The position numbers were made by a program, and so were the translations under genes. Of a stretch of 64,000 nucleotides of DNA, positions 2,466-38,494 are shown piece by piece. The notes below the pieces were generated by a model. The model saw only the letters and a program-made list of their open reading frames with translations. It was not told the DNA's origin and made no database searches. Each line of letters begins with the position of its first letter. Position 1 is the stretch's first letter. The stretch is from positions 248,001-312,000 of IMG/VR virus record IMGVR_UViG_3300044712_001937; one strand, written 5' to 3'.

Positions 2466-3158
2466 TTAAAATAAATTTTCTACTTTGAATGACATTTCTA
2501 TGCCATCTATATTAAATACTTTGTTTCCCCAAGTATAATACTTATAACCTGAATTTTTTACAATAGGAATTATATCTTCCCTACATTTAGGGTCTGTTGA
2601 GACCGATAACTTAGAATTAAAAACGTATTTCCAACTCATTGCTTTTTCTGGAATATTGTCTTTAAGTTTTTCAGACAGTTCATCTACTGTGATTTTACAT
2701 GCATCTAAAAAATTTTCATTTCGATACCAGTTTGGACATAGATGTTCAGGTAGACCTAATCTTTCAGATTCAGTTTTCCATTCAGTTTTAACCCAATTAC
2801 CATGATTATCATATAATTCCCAACCATTATCAATTAAAAATTGTTCAGTAAATAAACTATTTTCAAACTCTTCTTTAAATTTAAGATAATTTTTATAACG
2901 ATTATTTCTTAAAGCAAGATTTTGTTTTTTATTATCTTCGATTCTATCATTAAATTCTTCATCAGTTTCTAAGCGTTTTCTATAAACTTCAAAATAATGA
3001 AAATCAGGAGTCCAACAATCATTATCATGATATCCTTCTTCAAAACTAGTTTGAATCACATCATCAGGTAAGATTGTAAACTTAACTTCTGACAATTGTA
3101 TTTTTATAGGACTATGTAATGTATAAACACATTCATCCACATATTTTTTATCTGCCAT
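2466..3158 (-). CDS. Hypothetical protein
   Basis: 230-aa ORF. Confidence 0.7.
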   Translation of the reverse strand: MADKKYVDECVYTLHSPIKIQLSEVKFTILPDDVIQTSFEEGYHDNDCWTPDFHYFEVYRKRLETDEEFNDRIEDNKKQNLALRNNRYKNYLKFKEEFENSLFTEQFLIDNGWELYDNHGNWVKTEWKTESERLGLPEHLCPNWYRNENFLDACKITVDELSEKLKDNIPEKAMSWKYVFNSKLSVSTDPKCREDIIPIVKNSGYKYYTWGNKVFNIDGIEMSFKVENLF

Positions 3159-3567
3159 TTTTTAACTGTTTTAAAATTTCAGGAAAATATTTATCGCAAG
3201 AAGAATCTTTAGTTGATACTCTATATGTATAACTGGAATTATCAAATCTCTTATGTAACCAATCATCCTTTTTAAAGAATGTATAAGAACCATATACAAT
3301 TTCTTTTCTATTAATCAATTCAAGAATTTCTTTCACGAGTTCAATTCGTTTATTAAATTTTAATATCCTTGAATATGAGGTTTTAGCACTACGATTAACA
3401 CCATCGTAATCATCACAAGTACATTCCCTTGAAACATGACAATTATGCTTAAAGCACCATCTCTCAGTTTTAGCAACTTCATAGTGCGCTGCATGTTTTC
3501 TGGGTTGTTTGGGTCTGTTTGAATTTAAACATGAACCACAAGATTTTCCTAATTTAATTTCAATCAT
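3148..3567 (-). CDS. Cys-rich hypothetical protein (possible metal binding)
   Basis: CGSCLNS...WCFKH...CTCDDY. Confidence 0.6.
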   Translation of the reverse strand: MIEIKLGKSCGSCLNSNRPKQPRKHAAHYEVAKTERWCFKHNCHVSRECTCDDYDGVNRSAKTSYSRILKFNKRIELVKEILELINRKEIVYGSYTFFKKDDWLHKRFDNSSYTYRVSTKDSSCDKYFPEILKQLKNGR

Positions 3568-3624
3568 TTAAATTGAGATAATATAAATATTTCCGGATAA
3601 ATATACGAATAATAATTTAATTTG

Positions 3625-3918
3625 TTACTTTTTATCATTATAAAAATCATGAGTTTCAATTCCGGTGGAATTTTTTATTAATTTACGAATTTCATTACCT
3701 GCCCAAAATGCCATATATTCTCTATCCTTTAAATCCATTTTTTCAGTTTCCTGTAAATCATAAATTTTATCCATTAAAACAGATGAAAATATCTTAGTAG
3801 CTGCTCTTAATGCATCATCAGAAAAGTTAGGTTTAGAACCATTAAATGCTTCAAATTCCAATAAAGCATTCTCTATTTCAACAAGTATAGGTGTTAATTT
3901 ACTTCCAATTGTTTCCAT
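3625..3918 (-). CDS. Hypothetical protein
   Basis: 97-aa ORF. Confidence 0.65.
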   Translation of the reverse strand: METIGSKLTPILVEIENALLEFEAFNGSKPNFSDDALRAATKIFSSVLMDKIYDLQETEKMDLKDREYMAFWAGNEIRKLIKNSTGIETHDFYNDKK

Positions 3919-4170
3919 TATTCTTTATTTGTCATATGTATTATTGTTATATAATTTTGTATATGTATATTACTAATGTTTTAAACACTTATGTTAATTA
4001 ATTAGTTATAAGCCATGTATCAGTTTACTATGTAAAACATCTAACCTATCGCATACAGTATTGTAATAACTTCTGTAACCATCTTCAAACTTATGTTTAT
4101 TTCTCATTTCCCTTAGTTCATTTAACATTTTATCTATTTTTTGCACTTCCGAATCACAGTTTATAGTGTA

Positions 4171-4398
4171 TTATTTTTGTTTTGGATAATAATATTTTAA
4201 ATTTATTTTTAAAATATATAAGTCCTTAATAAACTTATTCATCAAATCTCTTTCTGCGAAGAAACGAATGTTTTTTGTTCCATCTTTAAATTTGGTAGGT
4301 GGTGCTGTATTATCAATTAATTTAGATAGTTTATCTATTTCACACTCAACATCTTTAATTGATATAAATCCAAGTTTAAATAATATTATTTTTATCAT
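4171..4398 (-). CDS. Hypothetical protein; reading frame stays open for about 54 more codons after its TAA
   Basis: ORF track plus hand translation past 4171. Confidence 0.55.
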   Translation of the reverse strand: MIKIILFKLGFISIKDVECEIDKLSKLIDNTAPPTKFKDGTKNIRFFAERDLMNKFIKDLYILKINLKYYYPKQK

Positions 4399-5212: not shown

Positions 5213-5767
5213 ATGGATATTAAAGAGATAAAAAACGGAGATTCATTTTTAGTTAATGGCGATACATTCCTAAGTCGCACTATTTGTAAAGTAATGAAAC
5301 ATTGGGGAAAGAAGAAAGGATATAATACCACTATTCTTTACAGTCATGCAGCCAGATTTTGTTGGATTGCTGACGAATTGTATTTATTTGGTAGTGTTGA
5401 TAATGGTTATCAACCAATTAAATTTAGATTGCATTATGATTGGAATAAAGATGATTTCGCAATCATGAGACGTAAAACTGAATTAAGTGCTACTGAAGAA
5501 AAACAAACAATCAATTATTGTTTACATTTAGATACTGTAAGTGTAGGGTATCAATATTGGAATTTCATTCAATGGCTATTATTAGCATATGTAGGAATAA
5601 ATACATTCAAGAAAGGTACTAATGATAGTTTTAATTATTGCTATGAAAGTGAACGTAAATGTAGAAAAGATTTAAATCCTGAAAATTATGGTGATGTTTC
5701 TCAAACTGATATTTTTGATTTATTGTATGACCCAAATTATACAATCCTATATCGCTCTAAGAAATAA
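5213..5767 (+). CDS. Putative permuted papain-like (NlpC/P60, YiiX-like) peptidase/amidase
   Basis: N-terminal GDSFLV..., YSHAAR His motif, C-terminal YCYES Cys motif in permuted order. Confidence 0.5.
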   Translation: MDIKEIKNGDSFLVNGDTFLSRTICKVMKHWGKKKGYNTTILYSHAARFCWIADELYLFGSVDNGYQPIKFRLHYDWNKDDFAIMRRKTELSATEEKQTINYCLHLDTVSVGYQYWNFIQWLLLAYVGINTFKKGTNDSFNYCYESERKCRKDLNPENYGDVSQTDIFDLLYDPNYTILYRSKK

Positions 5768-5775
5768 CATTAAAT

Positions 5776-5820
5776 AAAAAAATCTCGCCAATTTGACGAG
5801 ATTTTGGCGAGATTTTTTTA
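5776..5820. terminator. Bidirectional terminator between convergent genes
   Basis: AAAATCTCGCCAA / TTGGCGAGATTTT stem, A/T runs on both sides; loop holds a second CGAGATT copy. Confidence 0.7.
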
Positions 5821-5829
5821 TTTAATTTA

Positions 5830-6408
5830 TTATCCGAACATTATAGCATACGTTAATCCTATTGCACCTGCAAAGAAAAATATATGTAATACTTTTACAA
5901 ACTCAACTCCTTCATATTCAGCACCCTGAATAATTTCATACTCTTTAGGTAGCCAAAATTTCCATCCATTATCTTTAACTACAATACGTCTTGTACACAT
6001 ATTTTTATAACTACGGAAAATAAAAAATGTCACTATAAACATGAATATTAACCCAATTATAATTCGCATAAAATCTTTACCTACAACTTTCCAAGCAATC
6101 ATAATCATTGTAAATCGACCAACATCTGTTTTTCCAAATTTATCGGCAACATCAACAACAGCATTTAAACCTTCTTTCACAGCAGTTCCAACTTCACCAC
6201 CGACTCCAACCCATTTTCCATAAGTATCGAGTTTCTTTTGAAGTTCAGCAGCAGTTTGTTCAGCTTTAATTTTAGTCAATTGCTCAACTGTTAAATCAGT
6301 TGCATTAACTGTAAACTTTTCAGGAGTTGAACTTTGAGCATTTGCATTAGGACAACACGCAACCACAATAACTGCGATAATTAATGATAAAATAATTTTT
6401 TTTTTCAT
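5830..6408 (-). CDS. Membrane protein with signal peptide
   Basis: N-terminal signal peptide, two or three TM segments. Confidence 0.7.
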   Translation of the reverse strand: MKKKIILSLIIAVIVVACCPNANAQSSTPEKFTVNATDLTVEQLTKIKAEQTAAELQKKLDTYGKWVGVGGEVGTAVKEGLNAVVDVADKFGKTDVGRFTMIMIAWKVVGKDFMRIIIGLIFMFIVTFFIFRSYKNMCTRRIVVKDNGWKFWLPKEYEIIQGAEYEGVEFVKVLHIFFFAGAIGLTYAIMFG

Positions 6409-6534
6409 ACGTTTAAATTTATATTAGTTCTTAAGTTTAAAATTATTAATACGTTTAAATATTAAAATTGTTGCACCAAAAATAAAAAAACCCTCACAAT
6501 ACTGCAAGGGTTTTTCAATATAATTTTTTATTAT

Positions 6535-7335
6535 TTATTTAATACCACCAACAAGAGCATTAACCGGAGTGTTACCGTATAATGGAGTTTTACCATCCCA
6601 TTTTTCGATAAACTGTTGCATAAGAATTTCTTTAGTTAAACCTTTTGATAAGTTTATATTTTCTTGTGCTTTAAGTAGTGCCAATTCATTCTTTTTCTTT
6701 TGTTCGGTAATTTGCTGGTCGATTACAGAAATATTGGTATTTACTTCATTACGACTATCAATTTTAGCTTTTACTTTATCGGTAAATTCAAGCTGGCTGG
6801 AGAATGTTAATAATTCTAATCCTTTAGCATTAAATTCTTTTTTAACTAATTCTTGCACTTTATTTTCAAATCGAAGTGAACCACCATTTGCCATTAAAGT
6901 ATCGGTAGTATACATACGTGATTCTTCTTTCATTAAATCATAAATCTTAGTTTCCAAAATATTATCTTCTAATGCTTTCATGAAATCTGAACCAGAACCT
7001 AATTGTTTATTATCAAATACAACATCAACTGCACGTTCTTTAATAATTTTATAGGAATACATAGGTTTGCTACTAAAATCAGTATTATCCGCAGCTTTCA
7101 AATGTAAAATTCTATCACCAAAATCGGCACGTTGTTCCCATAATGGAACTTGAAAAAGTTCAGTACCGGGAGCTAAAACATTAACACGACCCATTTGTAA
7201 ACTAAAATCGGATTTACCGTTTTTACCATAATTTTCCATTAAAACACCTACATAGTTAGGAGCTACACGTTCACATGAAGTGAAAATTGACAAGGCAGTT
7301 ACTGCCAATAAAAGGAACAGACTAATTTTTCTCAT
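6535..7335 (-). CDS. SPFH/band-7 domain lipoprotein
   Basis: Lipobox-like FTSC; VAPNYVGV, C-terminal QQFIEKWDGKTP typical of phage SPFH proteins. Confidence 0.8.
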   Translation of the reverse strand: MRKISLFLLLAVTALSIFTSCERVAPNYVGVLMENYGKNGKSDFSLQMGRVNVLAPGTELFQVPLWEQRADFGDRILHLKAADNTDFSSKPMYSYKIIKERAVDVVFDNKQLGSGSDFMKALEDNILETKIYDLMKEESRMYTTDTLMANGGSLRFENKVQELVKKEFNAKGLELLTFSSQLEFTDKVKAKIDSRNEVNTNISVIDQQITEQKKKNELALLKAQENINLSKGLTKEILMQQFIEKWDGKTPLYGNTPVNALVGGIK

Positions 7336-10295: not shown

Positions 10296-10350
10296 AAATG
10301 AATATTTAAGACAAATTTAAAAATAATAAATATCAATTCAAAATGTTTTT

Positions 10351-10384
10351 AAAAAAAAAGAGGATGCATCACTGCAGCCTCTTT
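10351..10384 (-). terminator. Intrinsic terminator closing the long non-coding tract
   Basis: AAAGAGG/CCTCTTT stem plus a 9-nt T-run on minus. Confidence 0.7.
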
Positions 10385-10800
10385 AATTGTTTTTAAAAAT
10401 AAGAAAAATTTTAATATTTTAAAAAATAGGTTAAATAGTAATAAGGTAATATAGATAATGTCAAAATCAACGTCAATGGCACAGACCTTCTTCCACATCA
10501 AGGACACAGACAAAAACTAAGTCTTTTTTCGTAAGCTAATTATCCAAGCCAGCATGTTTACATGAAGGACTAATAGGTAACTTATCTTACTACATGGTGG
10601 TTGTTTAAAAAGAACCCCAAAAAAACTTTATTAGTTTTGTAGAAGAAGCGGTTTTTTGCATATTAGATATCCAATATCCGAAGATTTGGATGCCAAATAA
10701 ATTGTTAATTTATTTATTTATCATAGTATTTTTAAAGAACCTTATTACTAAATATAAAGAAAGGCAAACTCGGTTTATACTTTATTTGCCTTTCACCCTA
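10385..10800 (-). ncRNA. Candidate structured ncRNA / long 3' element downstream of the 316-aa gene
   Basis: No ORF of 60 aa or more; 10-bp stem 10759-10794; cUUCGg-capped hairpin 10669-10691; period-6 tract about 10430-10522. Confidence 0.5.
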
Positions 10801-10801
10801 T

Positions 10802-11752
10802 TTAGTTTTCTATATCGTCAGTATTATCGTTTTTATTAAGTTCGTTTAAGAACAAATCGATAGTTTTTTGGAATCTACTATCTACTTCAATTCGCATTGA
10901 AGCAATCGTTGAAATAGCATCCTGACGAGTTTTTTCAAACTCATTATTTACGCCACGAACTACTTCATTATATTTCTTCATTTCGCTATCATAATCAATA
11001 CGAAGATTTGAGTTAATCTCATCAATATTTGCTTGTTTATCTGCATTAACTTTTGCAATACGAGCATTTTCGGCAGTTGCCAAGTTTTTAACCTTGGCTT
11101 TAAAATAATTAACTCGTTGTTCGTATTGACGATGCAAACCAGCTAATTCTTCATGAACCTTAAGTAATTCATCAGGAGTGTGATGAACAGTAATTTCAAT
11201 TGGAGTTTTTTCTCCAACTTTAAGTTCCATCCAATCAATTTCTGGAACATTTGGAAGTTCATCCCTTAATCGAGAAAGATGACCATCTTTATGAATAAAT
11301 TGTCCAATGTGAGCTGCAAATGCTTCAGCTTCCATATATTCATTTAATTCAGTAGTTGATAATTGTTCCCAACCAAAATTTTCATTAACTTGTGGCATGG
11401 GTTGATAATTTTCAAATGTAGGACGTTTAGGCATTTCAATATTTGAAATGTCAGCTATTTCACTACGAACATTTTTAAGCAATAAATCTTTAGCTTTAAT
11501 GTTTTCCATTAAAAATGCCTGACAAGCGTGTAATTCAGCAACTTCTTTCAATTTACTTACTACATCAGTAGGTAATTTAACACCAGTTTTAAGAGTTTTT
11601 TCTGAATCACCAACTTTAATTGTTTTTTTAAAGTTGTTAACTTGAGTTAACTCATTACTGATTTTAATTGCTCTTTGATTACAAAGATTGGAAATAGATT
11701 GAGCTTGTGAAAGACTCAAACCTTTATTTGGAACTAAATTATTCTTCTTCAT
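10802..11752 (-). CDS. Conserved-looking coiled-coil phage protein of unknown function
   Basis: GLSLSQAQSISNLCNQ, AAHIGQFIHKDGHLS; long helical C-terminus; TATCTTTG upstream. Confidence 0.75.
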   Translation of the reverse strand: MKKNNLVPNKGLSLSQAQSISNLCNQRAIKISNELTQVNNFKKTIKVGDSEKTLKTGVKLPTDVVSKLKEVAELHACQAFLMENIKAKDLLLKNVRSEIADISNIEMPKRPTFENYQPMPQVNENFGWEQLSTTELNEYMEAEAFAAHIGQFIHKDGHLSRLRDELPNVPEIDWMELKVGEKTPIEITVHHTPDELLKVHEELAGLHRQYEQRVNYFKAKVKNLATAENARIAKVNADKQANIDEINSNLRIDYDSEMKKYNEVVRGVNNEFEKTRQDAISTIASMRIEVDSRFQKTIDLFLNELNKNDNTDDIEN

Positions 11753-37333: not shown

Positions 37334-38494
37334 TCATTCTAAAATTCCTTTATCGCTAAATGTTTTATATAATTTTAATGATGTTGCATACATTAAATTA
37401 GGAATTTCATCTGCAATAATATCAATCAGTTGATTATTTACTGTAACTGGAAAATGTGGGGGAACTTGGTCTAAACAAGTAACAACAATATTTTTATTTG
37501 AATACATATTATGATGACAATCGCAACAAAATGCATATTTTAATAATTCAATATCCAATACCGATTTTCTAAAATCACCTTGAAATCCACCATTAACATT
37601 AGTTTCTAATGGATTATTAATTATATATGAATTATCTAATTCTTCGTTTGTCATAAAACCATTACCATGCCGAGTTTGATATGCACGTGTAATATAATAA
37701 GTTTGAATATTAAAAATATCTTTTAGTATAGAATTTTTAATAATTTCTAAAGCATTTTTAGATGTCGTATTACTCCGGGTTACATTCGGAAAAAAACCAT
37801 AATTTTGGTCTAATAATATTCCTTGTCCACCTTCAAAAATATAATTATCATACTTTTTCGATGAAATTAAAATATCTAAATTTTCAACAATAATATAATT
37901 TTTAACCAAATTATCACAAGCAATAATAAAATCATCAACAGCTTTTTTTAATTTAAAATTTAAATTTACTTCAATATTATCATAATTATAGTTATAATAA
38001 TTATCTTGAATCAATTTTAATTTAGCGTCACGAATTTTAGGAAATAATAAATCTCGAACATATAAATGAAAATAATCTTCATTTCTTTGAATAGTAGTAC
38101 CAAAACCTACGCCAACACTTCCGTGATTATTTACTTTTTCAAGTTTATGATTTTTAAAAATATCAAAAGGTGTTGTAACCATAGCATTTGAGTTATAAAT
38201 ATTAACTGGATTAACTCCAATATTATTTAAAACTAAACTTTCTTTATACACTCCAATTGGATTTACAGTACAATATTCTGACCAATAAGTATGTGCACCT
38301 TGAAATGAACCAGAACCAAAATTTGAAAATATATGTCGATGTTCGTCACTAAACACAACGGTATGTCCTACTTGATGTCCACCATTAAATCTAATTATTA
38401 ATGATTTTGGTGATTGTTTAGCTAAATAACTAACTGTAGCTCCTTTACCTTCATCTCCGAATTGTAATCCTAGAATTATAGATACTTTATCCAT
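37334..38494 (-). CDS. Divergent adenylosuccinate-synthetase-fold enzyme
   Basis: GLQFGDEGKG, RFNGGHQVGHT, FEGGQGILLD, TRAYQTRHGNG; lacks the canonical TTGRxRR aspartate loop. Confidence 0.85.
   Translation of the reverse strand: MDKVSIILGLQFGDEGKGATVSYLAKQSPKSLIIRFNGGHQVGHTVVFSDEHRHIFSNFGSGSFQGAHTYWSEYCTVNPIGVYKESLVLNNIGVNPVNIYNSNAMVTTPFDIFKNHKLEKVNNHGSVGVGFGTTIQRNEDYFHLYVRDLLFPKIRDAKLKLIQDNYYNYNYDNIEVNLNFKLKKAVDDFIIACDNLVKNYIIVENLDILISSKKYDNYIFEGGQGILLDQNYGFFPNVTRSNTTSKNALEIIKNSILKDIFNIQTYYITRAYQTRHGNGFMTNEELDNSYIINNPLETNVNGGFQGDFRKSVLDIELLKYAFCCDCHHNMYSNKNIVVTCLDQVPPHFPVTVNNQLIDIIADEIPNLMYATSLKLYKTFSDKGILE

Follow-up and report, generated by a model that had tools for sequence, protein, structure and literature searches.

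A conserved structured RNA gene linked to an uncharacterised protein gene in huge phages, gut phages and bacterial chromosomes

Known RNA and protein–RNA systems and the locus under study

The large "ornate" RNAs ROOL and GOLLD are carried by phages and prophages, have many helices and no assigned function, and typically lie next to tRNA islands; GOLLD env-38 lies downstream of a tRNA-Met (10.1101/2024.12.08.627333). They are about 580–800 nt long. OLE RNA, which is about 610 nt and occurs in Bacillota, is a large structured bacterial RNA whose partner-protein gene is adjacent and which forms a ribonucleoprotein with OapA, OapB and OapC. A different principle is seen in the RNAs bound by the ring-shaped proteins TRAP and HutP, which read spaced triplets: TRAP reads 11 G/UAG triplets spaced by 2–3 nt, while HutP reads two sets of three UAG triplets spaced by 4 nt. 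Bacterial Y RNAs associate with Ro60 (Rsr) in the rsr-yrlA-rtcBA RNA-repair context, and in type III toxin–antitoxin systems (ToxIN, CptIN, TenpIN) a protein gene is paired with a dedicated RNA gene in a mobile two-part cassette found in phages and bacteria.

We analysed a 64,000 nt stretch of DNA (the window), which corresponds to positions 248,001 to 312,000 of the IMG/VR virus record IMGVR_UViG_3300044712_001937. A preliminary description made from the sequence alone had reported a 316-residue coiled-coil gene followed by about 450 nt of structured, hexamer-periodic noncoding sequence closed by its own terminator, and had interpreted the tail as a conserved RNA partner, template or antitoxin of the protein, that is, as a type III toxin–antitoxin-like pair or a novel ribonucleoprotein. 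We find that the observation is confirmed, with each of the listed elements present at or very near the positions given for it, while the interpretation is only partly supported. The tail is a conserved structured RNA that is genetically coupled to the protein, which we call X, but the toxin–antitoxin reading is not supported, the template reading has no support, and a novel ribonucleoprotein remains the best reading, although it is inferred from linkage.

Compared with ROOL and GOLLD this RNA is also phage-borne and multi-helix, and 47 of 66 related huge-phage loci, as well as the gut and rodent phages, place it beside tRNA genes. It is however much smaller (170–380 nt), has an obligate adjacent protein gene and conserved single-stranded periodic tracts, and also occurs as an isolated cassette in bacterial chromosomes. 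OLE is unrelated in sequence and structure, and X is not a membrane protein and shares no Pfam family with the Oap proteins. The resemblance to TRAP and HutP targets lies in a triplet-like element (U-N-G, mostly UUG or UAG) that recurs at fixed spacing with unconserved spacers, in two blocks separated by a helix strand. This is an analogy of mechanism only, as X has no TRAP or HutP domain and the RNA is not a 5′ leader with terminator/antiterminator logic but lies 3′ of the gene and ends at a terminator whatever the downstream gene is. TnpB/IscB omega-RNA systems were also considered, in which the 3′ end of a RuvC/HNH nuclease gene overlaps its guide-RNA scaffold. X has no OrfB_IS605/RuvC domain and the cassette is single copy; a true TnpB beside the RNA in one related locus (L013) is a separate insertion.

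Neither part matched a described family. Covariance model searches against Rfam 15 (including RNase P, tmRNA, Y RNA/YrlA, GOLLD, ROOL, OLE, HEARO, raiA and 6S) gave no hit at the gathering score in the window, nor in 17 related loci apart from tRNAs, and at E ≤ 10 the tail gave only chance-level hits. ARAGORN found no tRNA or tmRNA in the window. RNase P RNA and tmRNA, suggested by the tRNA context, have no Rfam or ARAGORN support. Literature searches found no description of this RNA.

Architecture of the RNA and its protein gene

The X gene lies at 10802–11752 on the minus strand and encodes 316 amino acids, in a family of about 285–320 residues. We collected 2481 homologues, and the family forms 1026 clusters at 50% identity. 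No Pfam, NCBIfam or PADLOC family was matched, and a sequence profile search of the PDB returned nothing. The description as a coiled coil is only roughly right, since the AlphaFold model (pLDDT 86) shows long helical hairpins plus two beta-hairpins. Fold searches with this model (PDB by Foldseek, VIA-align wide, AFDB clusters, Swiss-Prot, BFVD and ESM Atlas) returned only uncharacterised homologues or generic helical matches. A weak PHROG hit to "head scaffolding" (E = 0.008) was treated as coiled-coil noise, since the surrounding genes are replication and nucleotide-metabolism genes. The sequence motifs proposed for the family, L-S/T-x3-A-x2-I-x-N-L and I/L-G-x2-IH-x-DG-x-LS, are indeed the conserved ones. 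The basic and polar residues K86, K88, R163, R208, K218, H154, N22 and N215 are invariant across families, although X is acidic overall (pI 5.7) and has no recognisable RNA-binding domain.

The tail that follows comprises 506 nt (10296–10801), with 11–15 stop codons in each sense frame and 10–16 in each antisense frame. The only ORF, of 54 residues at 10349–10513, runs through the terminator and is not conserved. In 99 related modules stop-free stretches have a median of 51 residues, and 1-nt indels occur inside the conserved core. Alternative genetic codes hiding a gene were rejected, as codes 4 and 15 barely change coding density and TAA dominates the stops of the tail. The minimum free energy of the whole tail has a z-score of −4.0. 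Within it, 10423–10800 on the minus strand encodes a structured RNA of about 375 nt, running from hairpin P1 through the 3′ strand of closing helix P2 plus a conserved AAC. An nhmmer search found a single copy in the genome. Covariance modelling was confined to the 3′ domain, and model R1, built from other phages only, hits 10423–10653 at E = 7e−15.

All features of the RNA lie on the minus strand. The 5′ hairpin P1 (10757–10796), which contains the 10-bp stem originally noted at 10759–10794, starts 5 nt after the stop codon of X, and its loop (10769–10784, UAAAGUAUAAACCGAG) matches the family consensus UAAGCACAAGCCGAU. In an alignment of 47 sequences (A1) folded with RNAalifold, the stem pairs of P1 show 6–19 of 47 sequences changed on both sides. 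The 5′ strand of P2 (10739–10752) pairs with 10431–10447 to form a closing helix, of 12–18 bp, in which 13 pairs have 6–19 compensatory sequences each. In an alignment-free test, duplex energies with the own partner strand were compared with those of swapped partners, giving −12.1 versus −5.2 kcal/mol for P1, −21.5 versus −8.6 kcal/mol for P2 and −13.8 versus −9.3 kcal/mol for P3. The cUUCGg hairpin of the preliminary description is a hairpin of the variable region (Pv, 10671–10689); hairpins at the equivalent position in relatives carry UUCG, UCCG or CCCG loops, and the own versus swapped energy is −5.8 versus −3.0 kcal/mol.

The long-range helix P3 (5′ strand 10639–10648, CUUCUUCUAC, preceded by a conserved CGC) pairs with 10487–10496 (GUGGAAGAAG, followed by the near-universal GGUCUUUG, which is GGUCUGUG in the window) and heads a rod of helices P4–P7. 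A formal pair count on a further alignment (A5) gave 7 pairs that are 99.4% paired, of which six have 18–27 of 47 sequences changed on both sides and the outermost has 1. For P3 and P6 together 98.3% are paired, 0 of 500 shuffles reach the observed values and slid controls give 38–56% paired, although these counts come from an alignment fitted to the model. P2 and P3 are retained with entirely different sequences in gut, rodent and bacterial versions. P4 (10631–10638, AAAACUAA, pairing with 10513–10520, UUAGUUUU) was found by RNAalifold with ribosum scoring, but is mostly invariant so that its covariation support is weak. A clade-specific inserted hairpin at 10596–10618 is present only in the window's subgroup. 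P6 (10582–10590 with 10531–10539), which RNAalifold on the 47 sequences gives together with P1 and P2, covaries and reads GUAAG/CUUAC in the window where most relatives have GCUAG/CUAGC; it encloses the variable P7 arm (10540–10581), so that the P6–P7 region spans 10531–10590.

The helices frame two single-stranded U-rich tracts with a conserved period-6 pattern, NNNU(U/A)G, at 10448–10520. Tract 1 (10497–10520) comprises the 3′ strand of P4 plus the U-rich internal loop UGUCUGUGUCCUUGAU, and has no indels in 47 sequences. Tract 2 (10448–10486) is a single-stranded linker of five to six hexamers between P3 and P2, with a constant length of 30–36 nt in every family, including those of bacteria. 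In the window alone the periodicity does not exceed that of shuffles (P = 0.27). Across 99 distinct relatives, however, five successive hexamers keep U at position 4 (95–99%) and G at position 6 (60–97%), with weakly conserved positions 1–3 and no indel over 36 nt. No covarying partner was found for either tract, and pairing with the A-rich 5′ variable region, J3/4 or the P1 loop gave no own versus swapped advantage. After a 48-nt A/U-rich spacer (10383–10430) the RNA is followed by an intrinsic-terminator-like element at 10351–10382, made of a hairpin (10360–10382) plus U9 (10351–10359). A simple terminator scan did not flag it, but comparable hairpins follow the RNA in many relatives.

Linkage, distribution and genomic context

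The linkage of the two parts held in every locus with enough flanking sequence. Of the protein-anchored loci 74 of 74 had the RNA, and of the RNA-anchored loci 91 of 91 had X upstream on the same strand, so no RNA was found without X. The condition set beforehand as a refutation, that homologues would be followed directly by unrelated coding sequences without conserved structure, was examined in this way and was not fulfilled. A covariance model built from one phage clade hits exactly once per locus, always 60–170 nt after the X stop codon, in 48 of 71 sources, including Moraxella, Capnocytophaga and gut phages. A signature detector scored 21 of 49 downstream regions, compared with 0 of 49 reverse complements, 0 of 49 shuffles and 3 of 49 upstream regions. 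Direct contiguity is not needed, as in about a fifth of huge-phage loci one or two extra ORFs (up to about 740 nt) separate X from the RNA. P1 begins at the stop codon of X, or of an inserted ORF, leaving no room for a promoter.

The pair occurs in huge soil and freshwater phages and recurs at 22–41% protein identity in 160–190 kb human-gut phages, in a 98.6 kb rodent-faeces phage, and patchily in Moraxella, Capnocytophaga and Bacteroidales chromosomes. The preliminary description had placed the protein in crAss-like and other Bacteroidota phages, also followed by such noncoding tracts, and occurrence in other phages of Bacteroidota-type hosts is borne out. INPHARED phage genomes gave only two hits. 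The cassette is found in 12 of 42 Moraxella and 14 of 31 Capnocytophaga species, is single copy, is sometimes pseudogenised, and has crossed phyla, with a 59% identical X in Moraxella and Capnocytophaga. Cultured carriers include Capnocytophaga sputigena NCTC11653, Moraxella lacunata, M. nonliquefaciens and Bacteroides cellulolyticus. The DNA sequencing runs found to contain this sequence are rhizosphere and soil metagenomes, and no RNA-seq run containing it could be listed.

In huge phages X is a syntenic and well conserved gene at the end of tRNA arrays. A same-strand tRNA lies upstream of X within the 4 kb of flank in 47 of 66 huge-phage loci, within 1 kb in 41, and as close as about 15 nt; the last tRNA before the cassette is tRNA-Met in 28 of 47 loci. 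A calcineurin-like phosphoesterase lies within 2.5 kb downstream of the X stop codon on the same strand in 20 of 64 huge-phage loci, and immediately upstream of X in 9 of 11 Moraxella loci, at 31–35% identity. A TROVE/Ro60 gene follows directly after the RNA in the five protein-anchored loci where its position was read (huge-phage loci L030, L063, L070, L071 and L074), and is present in 10 huge-phage loci in all. RtcB lies 1.4 kb downstream of X, after a tubulin-like gene, in the Bacteroides locus L281 and is present in the L276 locus. In the window's own genome, however, the cassette lies about 110 kb from the tRNA arrays and about 100 kb from the phosphoesterase homologue, and neighbours in bacteria are often plain housekeeping genes.

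A possible ribonucleoprotein and the alternatives

The analysis establishes that the tail is the gene for a structured RNA, oriented in the direction of the X gene and ending at its own terminator, with the helices and tracts described above, and that RNA and X form one cassette that is inherited and horizontally transferred as a unit in phages and in bacterial chromosomes. What the pair does, and that it is expressed at all, is inferred. In our view the two very probably work together, most likely in tRNA or RNA-end metabolism, but we hold the following explanation only tentatively, at somewhat less than even confidence. The RNA would be made as the 3′ part of the X transcript, which in many relatives would be a tRNA-array operon. 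X, probably as an oligomer, would recognise the regularly spaced U-N-G triplets that the helices hold in place, resembling the way in which TRAP or HutP rings read spaced triplets. The resulting ribonucleoprotein would work in processing, repair or surveillance of tRNA or RNA ends, together with the phosphoesterase that is often encoded next to it. A more far-reaching possibility, which the data allow but which we consider doubtful, is that the particle of X oligomer and RNA scaffold recruits or regulates RNA-end enzymes (metallophosphoesterase, RtcB, Ro60) on tRNAs or other broken RNAs, as a previously unknown, widely distributed ribonucleoprotein of phages and bacteria. This would be a new RNA-based component of tRNA maintenance, carried by huge phages at the end of their tRNA operons.

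The leading alternative, though unlikely, is that the RNA acts on its own or with host factors, as ROOL and GOLLD are thought to, and shares an operon with X only because both belong to the phage tRNA module. The tRNA-Met context, the absence of a known RNA-binding fold in X and the ORFs that can separate the two are consistent with this, but linkage to X survives where the tRNA context is lost, as in the window's clade, in Moraxella and in Capnocytophaga, and also survives inter-phylum transfer. A cis-acting 3′ element controlling stability or translation of the X mRNA, possibly through autoregulation by X binding to the periodic tract as T4 gp32 or TRAP act on their own or target leaders, is less likely still. 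It would fit the strict same-strand position downstream of X, the start of P1 at the stop codon and the terminator. However, a multi-helix architecture of 170–380 nt conserved from phages to bacteria is more than known 3′ stabilisers need, inserted ORFs of 60–250 residues are tolerated, and the RNA core is more conserved in sequence (70–84% of nucleotides) than the protein (about 50% of amino acids).

It is quite improbable that the RNA is a Y-RNA-like partner of a host or phage Ro60 in RNA quality control, with X as an accessory. The TROVE gene directly after the RNA in some huge phages is where bacterial Y RNAs are expected, paired 5′ and 3′ regions form a long stem as in Y RNAs, RtcB neighbours occur, and Bacteroides thetaiotaomicron, examined as a control, carries TROVE. 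TROVE is however absent from the window's genome and from four other carriers (genomes G001, G002 and G004, and PQ006092), most carriers lack it, no Y RNA or YrlA match and no tRNA-like domain was found, and the closing helix P2 varies freely in sequence whereas the Ro-binding helix of Y RNAs is conserved. A type III toxin–antitoxin or abortive-infection pair is very unlikely. The cassette is patchy, mobile and two-part, with one locus next to a WYL regulator and another next to an integrase. On the other hand the RNA lies downstream of the gene rather than upstream, Tandem Repeats Finder detected only a weak A/T-rich 27-nt repeat in two copies at 10390–10443 rather than an array of 34–36 nt repeats, X has no ToxN/AbiQ/CptN-like domain or fold and no PADLOC hit, and X is strongly conserved across a whole huge-phage clade. 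Least likely of all is that the tail is not an RNA but holds small protein genes, a promoter array or a replication origin. A sigma-70-like TTGACG-17-TATATT lies at 10476–10448, a 20-codon ORF can be read on the opposite strand in some members, and an A/T-rich stretch follows the RNA. Yet promoter-like matches are at chance level (21 found versus 19.9 expected), 1-nt indels break every candidate frame, the GC-skew extremes lie at 235 kb and at the genome ends rather than at 258.6 kb, and compensatory changes link segments about 300 nt apart, which only an RNA explains.

The pair is very common, with more than 1000 protein clusters at 50% identity, and spans phages and cultured Moraxella, Capnocytophaga and Bacteroides, so that the hypothesis is open to direct testing in culturable bacteria. 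The finding also corrects annotation, since at least one GenBank phage record calls a coding sequence on top of the RNA. The RNA would add a new class to the short list of large structured bacterial and phage RNAs, and is one of the few with an obvious protein partner. Its repeated placement beside tRNA arrays, a phosphoesterase, Ro60 and RtcB gives a concrete, testable handle on why large phages carry tRNA operons and how they maintain them.

A structured RNA downstream of the gene for protein X

The window is part of a 364.7 kb IMG/VR phage genome with direct terminal repeats and a G+C content of about 25%, for which the standard genetic code fits. The gene at 10802-11752 (minus strand) encodes a protein of 316 amino acids, here called X, and is followed by 506 nt with 11-15 stop codons in each sense frame, ending in a hairpin plus U9 at 10351-10382. 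A weak A/T-rich 27-nt x2 tandem repeat at 10390-10443, between the end of the RNA described below and the terminator, is probably low-complexity sequence. The preliminary description of this tail had listed a stem, a cUUCGg hairpin and a hexamer tract, and its observation held, as each of these is present where it was placed.

To determine whether the tail is conserved we retrieved 80 IMG/VR loci encoding X homologues of 45-63% identity, most of which show the same ORF-free gap of 340-550 nt. A BLASTN comparison showed that about 100 nt of the tail (window about 10449-10544) is 70-84% identical across nearly all loci, although the proteins are only about 50% identical. Alignment of the whole module from 47 sequences, analyzed with RNAalifold, gave a 5' hairpin (P1) that begins right after the stop codon, a closing helix (P2) that joins the segment after P1 to the 3' end about 300 nt away, and an inner helix (P6), with 6-19 of the 47 sequences carrying changes on both sides of each pair. 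An alignment-free test, in which each sequence's own duplex was compared with duplexes formed with the partners of other sequences, supported P1 (-12.1 versus -5.2 kcal/mol), P2 (-21.5 versus -8.6) and a further long-range helix P3, CGCUUCnnCUAC / GUAGnnGAAGG (-13.8 versus -9.3), while control segment pairs showed no difference. RNAalifold with ribosum scoring on the majority clade added P4 and P5, and P3-P7 together form one rod, although P4, P5 and P7 rest mainly on conservation and folding rather than on covariation.

A covariance model was then built from the 3' domains of 25 majority-clade phages only. The model found the window RNA at 10423-10653 (E = 7e-15), and found exactly one hit, at the expected place and strand, in 48 of 71 sources. 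On the resulting alignment P3 and P6 are 98.3% paired and 17 of 18 pairs change on both sides; none of 500 shuffles reaches the observed values, and slid controls give 38-56% pairing. This alignment is fitted to the model and so leans towards the structure, a bias that the 47-sequence RNAalifold analysis and the alignment-free test do not have.

Two U-rich stretches flank the 3' strand of P3, the second of which is the linker between P3 and P2 and has no indel in 47 sequences. In 99 distinct sequences this linker reads as five hexamers in which position 4 is U (95-99%), position 6 is G (60-97%), position 5 is mostly U or A, and positions 1-3 vary. The pattern is not significant in the window alone (P = 0.27), and its reality rests on the family. 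Neither tract has a covarying partner elsewhere in the RNA, and they are therefore most likely single-stranded or engaged in non-Watson-Crick or protein contacts.

Linkage to X and distribution of the cassette

Nhmmer profiles of P1 and of the core found the RNA downstream of X, on the same strand and in single copy, in every protein-anchored locus with enough flank, and the window's genome also has a single copy. In about a fifth of loci one or two small ORFs lie between X and the RNA, in which case P1 starts at the stop codon of the last ORF. In the reverse test a core pattern retrieved 100 IMG/VR stretches, of which 91 had X directly upstream on the same strand, while the other nine had less than 450 nt of upstream sequence.

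The cassette is much wider than the huge phages. A 26%-identical homologue in a human-faecal phage fragment led to 47 loci from gut phage contigs of 95-280 kb, most of them of 100-190 kb, and a 41%-identical homologue lies in the 98.6 kb rodent-faeces phage PQ006092.1. Two distant metagenomic contigs were found through a profile search that counted 1026 clusters at 50% identity. All of these carry a shorter RNA of about 170-230 nt with the same plan, namely P2, then P3 preceded by CGC and followed by GGUCUUUG, an inner stem-loop, and two periodic tracts, the second of five hexamers, while the helix sequences are completely different. In PQ006092.1 the annotated hypothetical CDS XHH63432.1 (88046-88222; 3918-4094 of the extracted locus, L230) lies on top of the RNA, with P1, P2 and P3 all falling within or around it, and is probably not a gene. 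In gut phages a further stretch of about 230 nt (about 4125-4350 in locus L183) follows the RNA before the terminator. It is conserved, richer in G+C and visibly hairpin-rich, and may be a second domain or a second RNA. In MT836666.1 the X homologue (2980-3669 of locus L182) stops at 229 aa, whereas identical IMG/VR contigs encode 303 aa, which is probably a frameshift or an assembly error in that record.

A scan of one genome per species found 55 cellular loci, including Moraxella (12 of 42 species) and Capnocytophaga (14 of 31), with X also present in Bacteroides, Prevotella, Phocaeicola and a few Bacillota MAGs. In two loci examined the neighbours are ordinary chromosomal genes such as coaBC, an acyl-CoA synthetase, tex and an aldose epimerase. 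Moraxella and Capnocytophaga X are 59% identical, which implies transfer between phyla. Some copies are pseudogenes, and in some Moraxella and Capnocytophaga genomes X is interrupted by stops or split (contig C3 208214-209089 of genome G019, contig C34 61942-62463 of genome G054, and genomes G012 and G016), consistent with a dispensable accessory gene. Under strict criteria the RNA signature was detected downstream in 21 of 49 loci, compared with 0 of 49 reverse complements, 0 of 49 shuffles, 3 of 49 upstream regions and 1 of 49 gene interiors. A more lenient setting found more, and the covariance model hit 34 of the 53 genome loci searched, with detection in Bacteroidales genomes being incomplete.

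Genomic context and properties of X

The window around the cassette holds replication, recombination and nucleotide-metabolism genes, which include Dda helicase, DNA ligase, a Rad50/SbcC-like protein and a PurZ-like enzyme. The last is an adenylosuccinate-synthetase-like gene at 37334-38494 (minus strand) whose best PHROG match is phrog_1211, labelled "2-aminooxy adenylosuccinate synthetase", which we read as PurZ-like; the phage may replace adenine by 2-aminoadenine in its DNA. The window holds no tRNA. The genome has 49 tRNA genes in arrays (contig C1 104111-148110), but these lie about 110 kb from the cassette. One of them, at 148036-148110, has a CUA anticodon and so reads amber, although the standard code fits the window. 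In contrast, in 47 of 66 related huge-phage loci a same-strand tRNA lies upstream of X within the 4 kb of flank, in 41 of them within 1 kb, and the last tRNA is tRNA-Met in 28 of the 47. Gut phages have tRNA-Leu(UAA) 30-920 nt upstream of X, and the rodent phage has two tRNA-Arg about 30 and 220 nt upstream. In locus L045 ARAGORN calls a permuted tmRNA (1040-1571) that overlaps three tRNA genes inside the array upstream of X, probably a false call.

A calcineurin-like metallophosphoesterase travels with the cassette (5289-5939 in locus L018, 5266-6024 in L028 and 1991-2926 in L244). It lies within 2.5 kb downstream of the X stop on the same strand in 20 of 64 huge-phage loci, where it is downstream of the RNA, and immediately upstream of X in 9 of 11 Moraxella loci, at 31-35% identity. 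The window's genome has a homologue at 157.9 kb. A TROVE/Ro60 homologue is encoded directly after the RNA in a subset of huge phages of 207-434 kb (5339-6919 in locus L030; also L063, L070, L071 and L074) and is present in 10 huge-phage loci in all, but is absent from the window's genome. In Bacteroides cellulolyticus (locus L281, 4293-6541) the RNA is followed by a tubulin/FtsZ-like gene and then by the RNA ligase RtcB, and homologues of both also lie in locus L276. Other recurrent neighbours are a YqeY-like gene and, in the window, a tRNA-methyltransferase-like gene. The site downstream of the RNA looks like an insertion hot spot, as a TnpB (OrfB_IS605 / Cas12f-like TNB) gene is inserted right after the RNA in one huge phage (locus L013, 5486-6922) and a NUMOD3 homing-endonuclease-like gene occupies the same place in locus L055.

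X matches no Pfam, NCBIfam or PADLOC family, and its one PHROG hit is weak and coiled-coil-like. The AlphaFold model is confident (pLDDT 86, pTM 0.76) and shows long helical hairpins and two beta-hairpins, but it matches nothing informative in PDB, AFDB, Swiss-Prot, BFVD or the ESM Atlas. Residues invariant across the phage families include G11, L12, N22, E83, K86, K88, G150, I153, H154, R163, R208, E211, N215 and K218, while the histidines that are invariant within the huge-phage clade are not conserved more widely.

Relation to known RNAs and possible role

Rfam 15 has no matching family for the window or for 17 related loci, and full-text searches of the literature found no description, although the motif could still be an unnamed entry in bulk catalogues of candidate viral RNAs (PMC10690425). 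By context it resembles ROOL and GOLLD, which are phage RNAs near tRNA islands (10.1101/2024.12.08.627333), and by having a partner gene it resembles OLE, but it is unrelated to all of these in sequence and structure. We place it with the orphan structured RNAs that have a candidate protein partner, with a substantial chance that it is a new kind of RNP.

What the analysis establishes is a new structured RNA gene and its strict genetic coupling to X across phages and bacteria; co-transcription, binding and function are inferred from sequence and context alone, and host assignment is indirect. The suggestion in the preliminary description that the tail is an RNA partner of X, type III toxin-antitoxin-like or a novel RNP, is thus partly supported, in that the conserved RNA and its linkage are real while a type III-like toxin-antitoxin is very unlikely. 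Of the other alternatives, a stand-alone RNA of the ROOL/GOLLD sort is unlikely but the nearest competitor, a cis-acting 3' element is less likely still, a Y-RNA-like partner of Ro is slightly less improbable than the toxin-antitoxin, and a non-RNA element is the most remote.

The reading that we tentatively favor, without regarding it as secure, begins with co-transcription of the RNA with X, because there is no room for a promoter and tRNAs lie as close as about 15 nt upstream of X. In this view X would bind the RNA, most plausibly at the regularly spaced U-N-G elements, whose fixed number and spacing suggest an oligomer that reads them as TRAP or HutP read spaced triplets. Given the tRNA arrays and the phosphoesterase, Ro60 and RtcB neighbors, the particle would work in tRNA or RNA-end metabolism.
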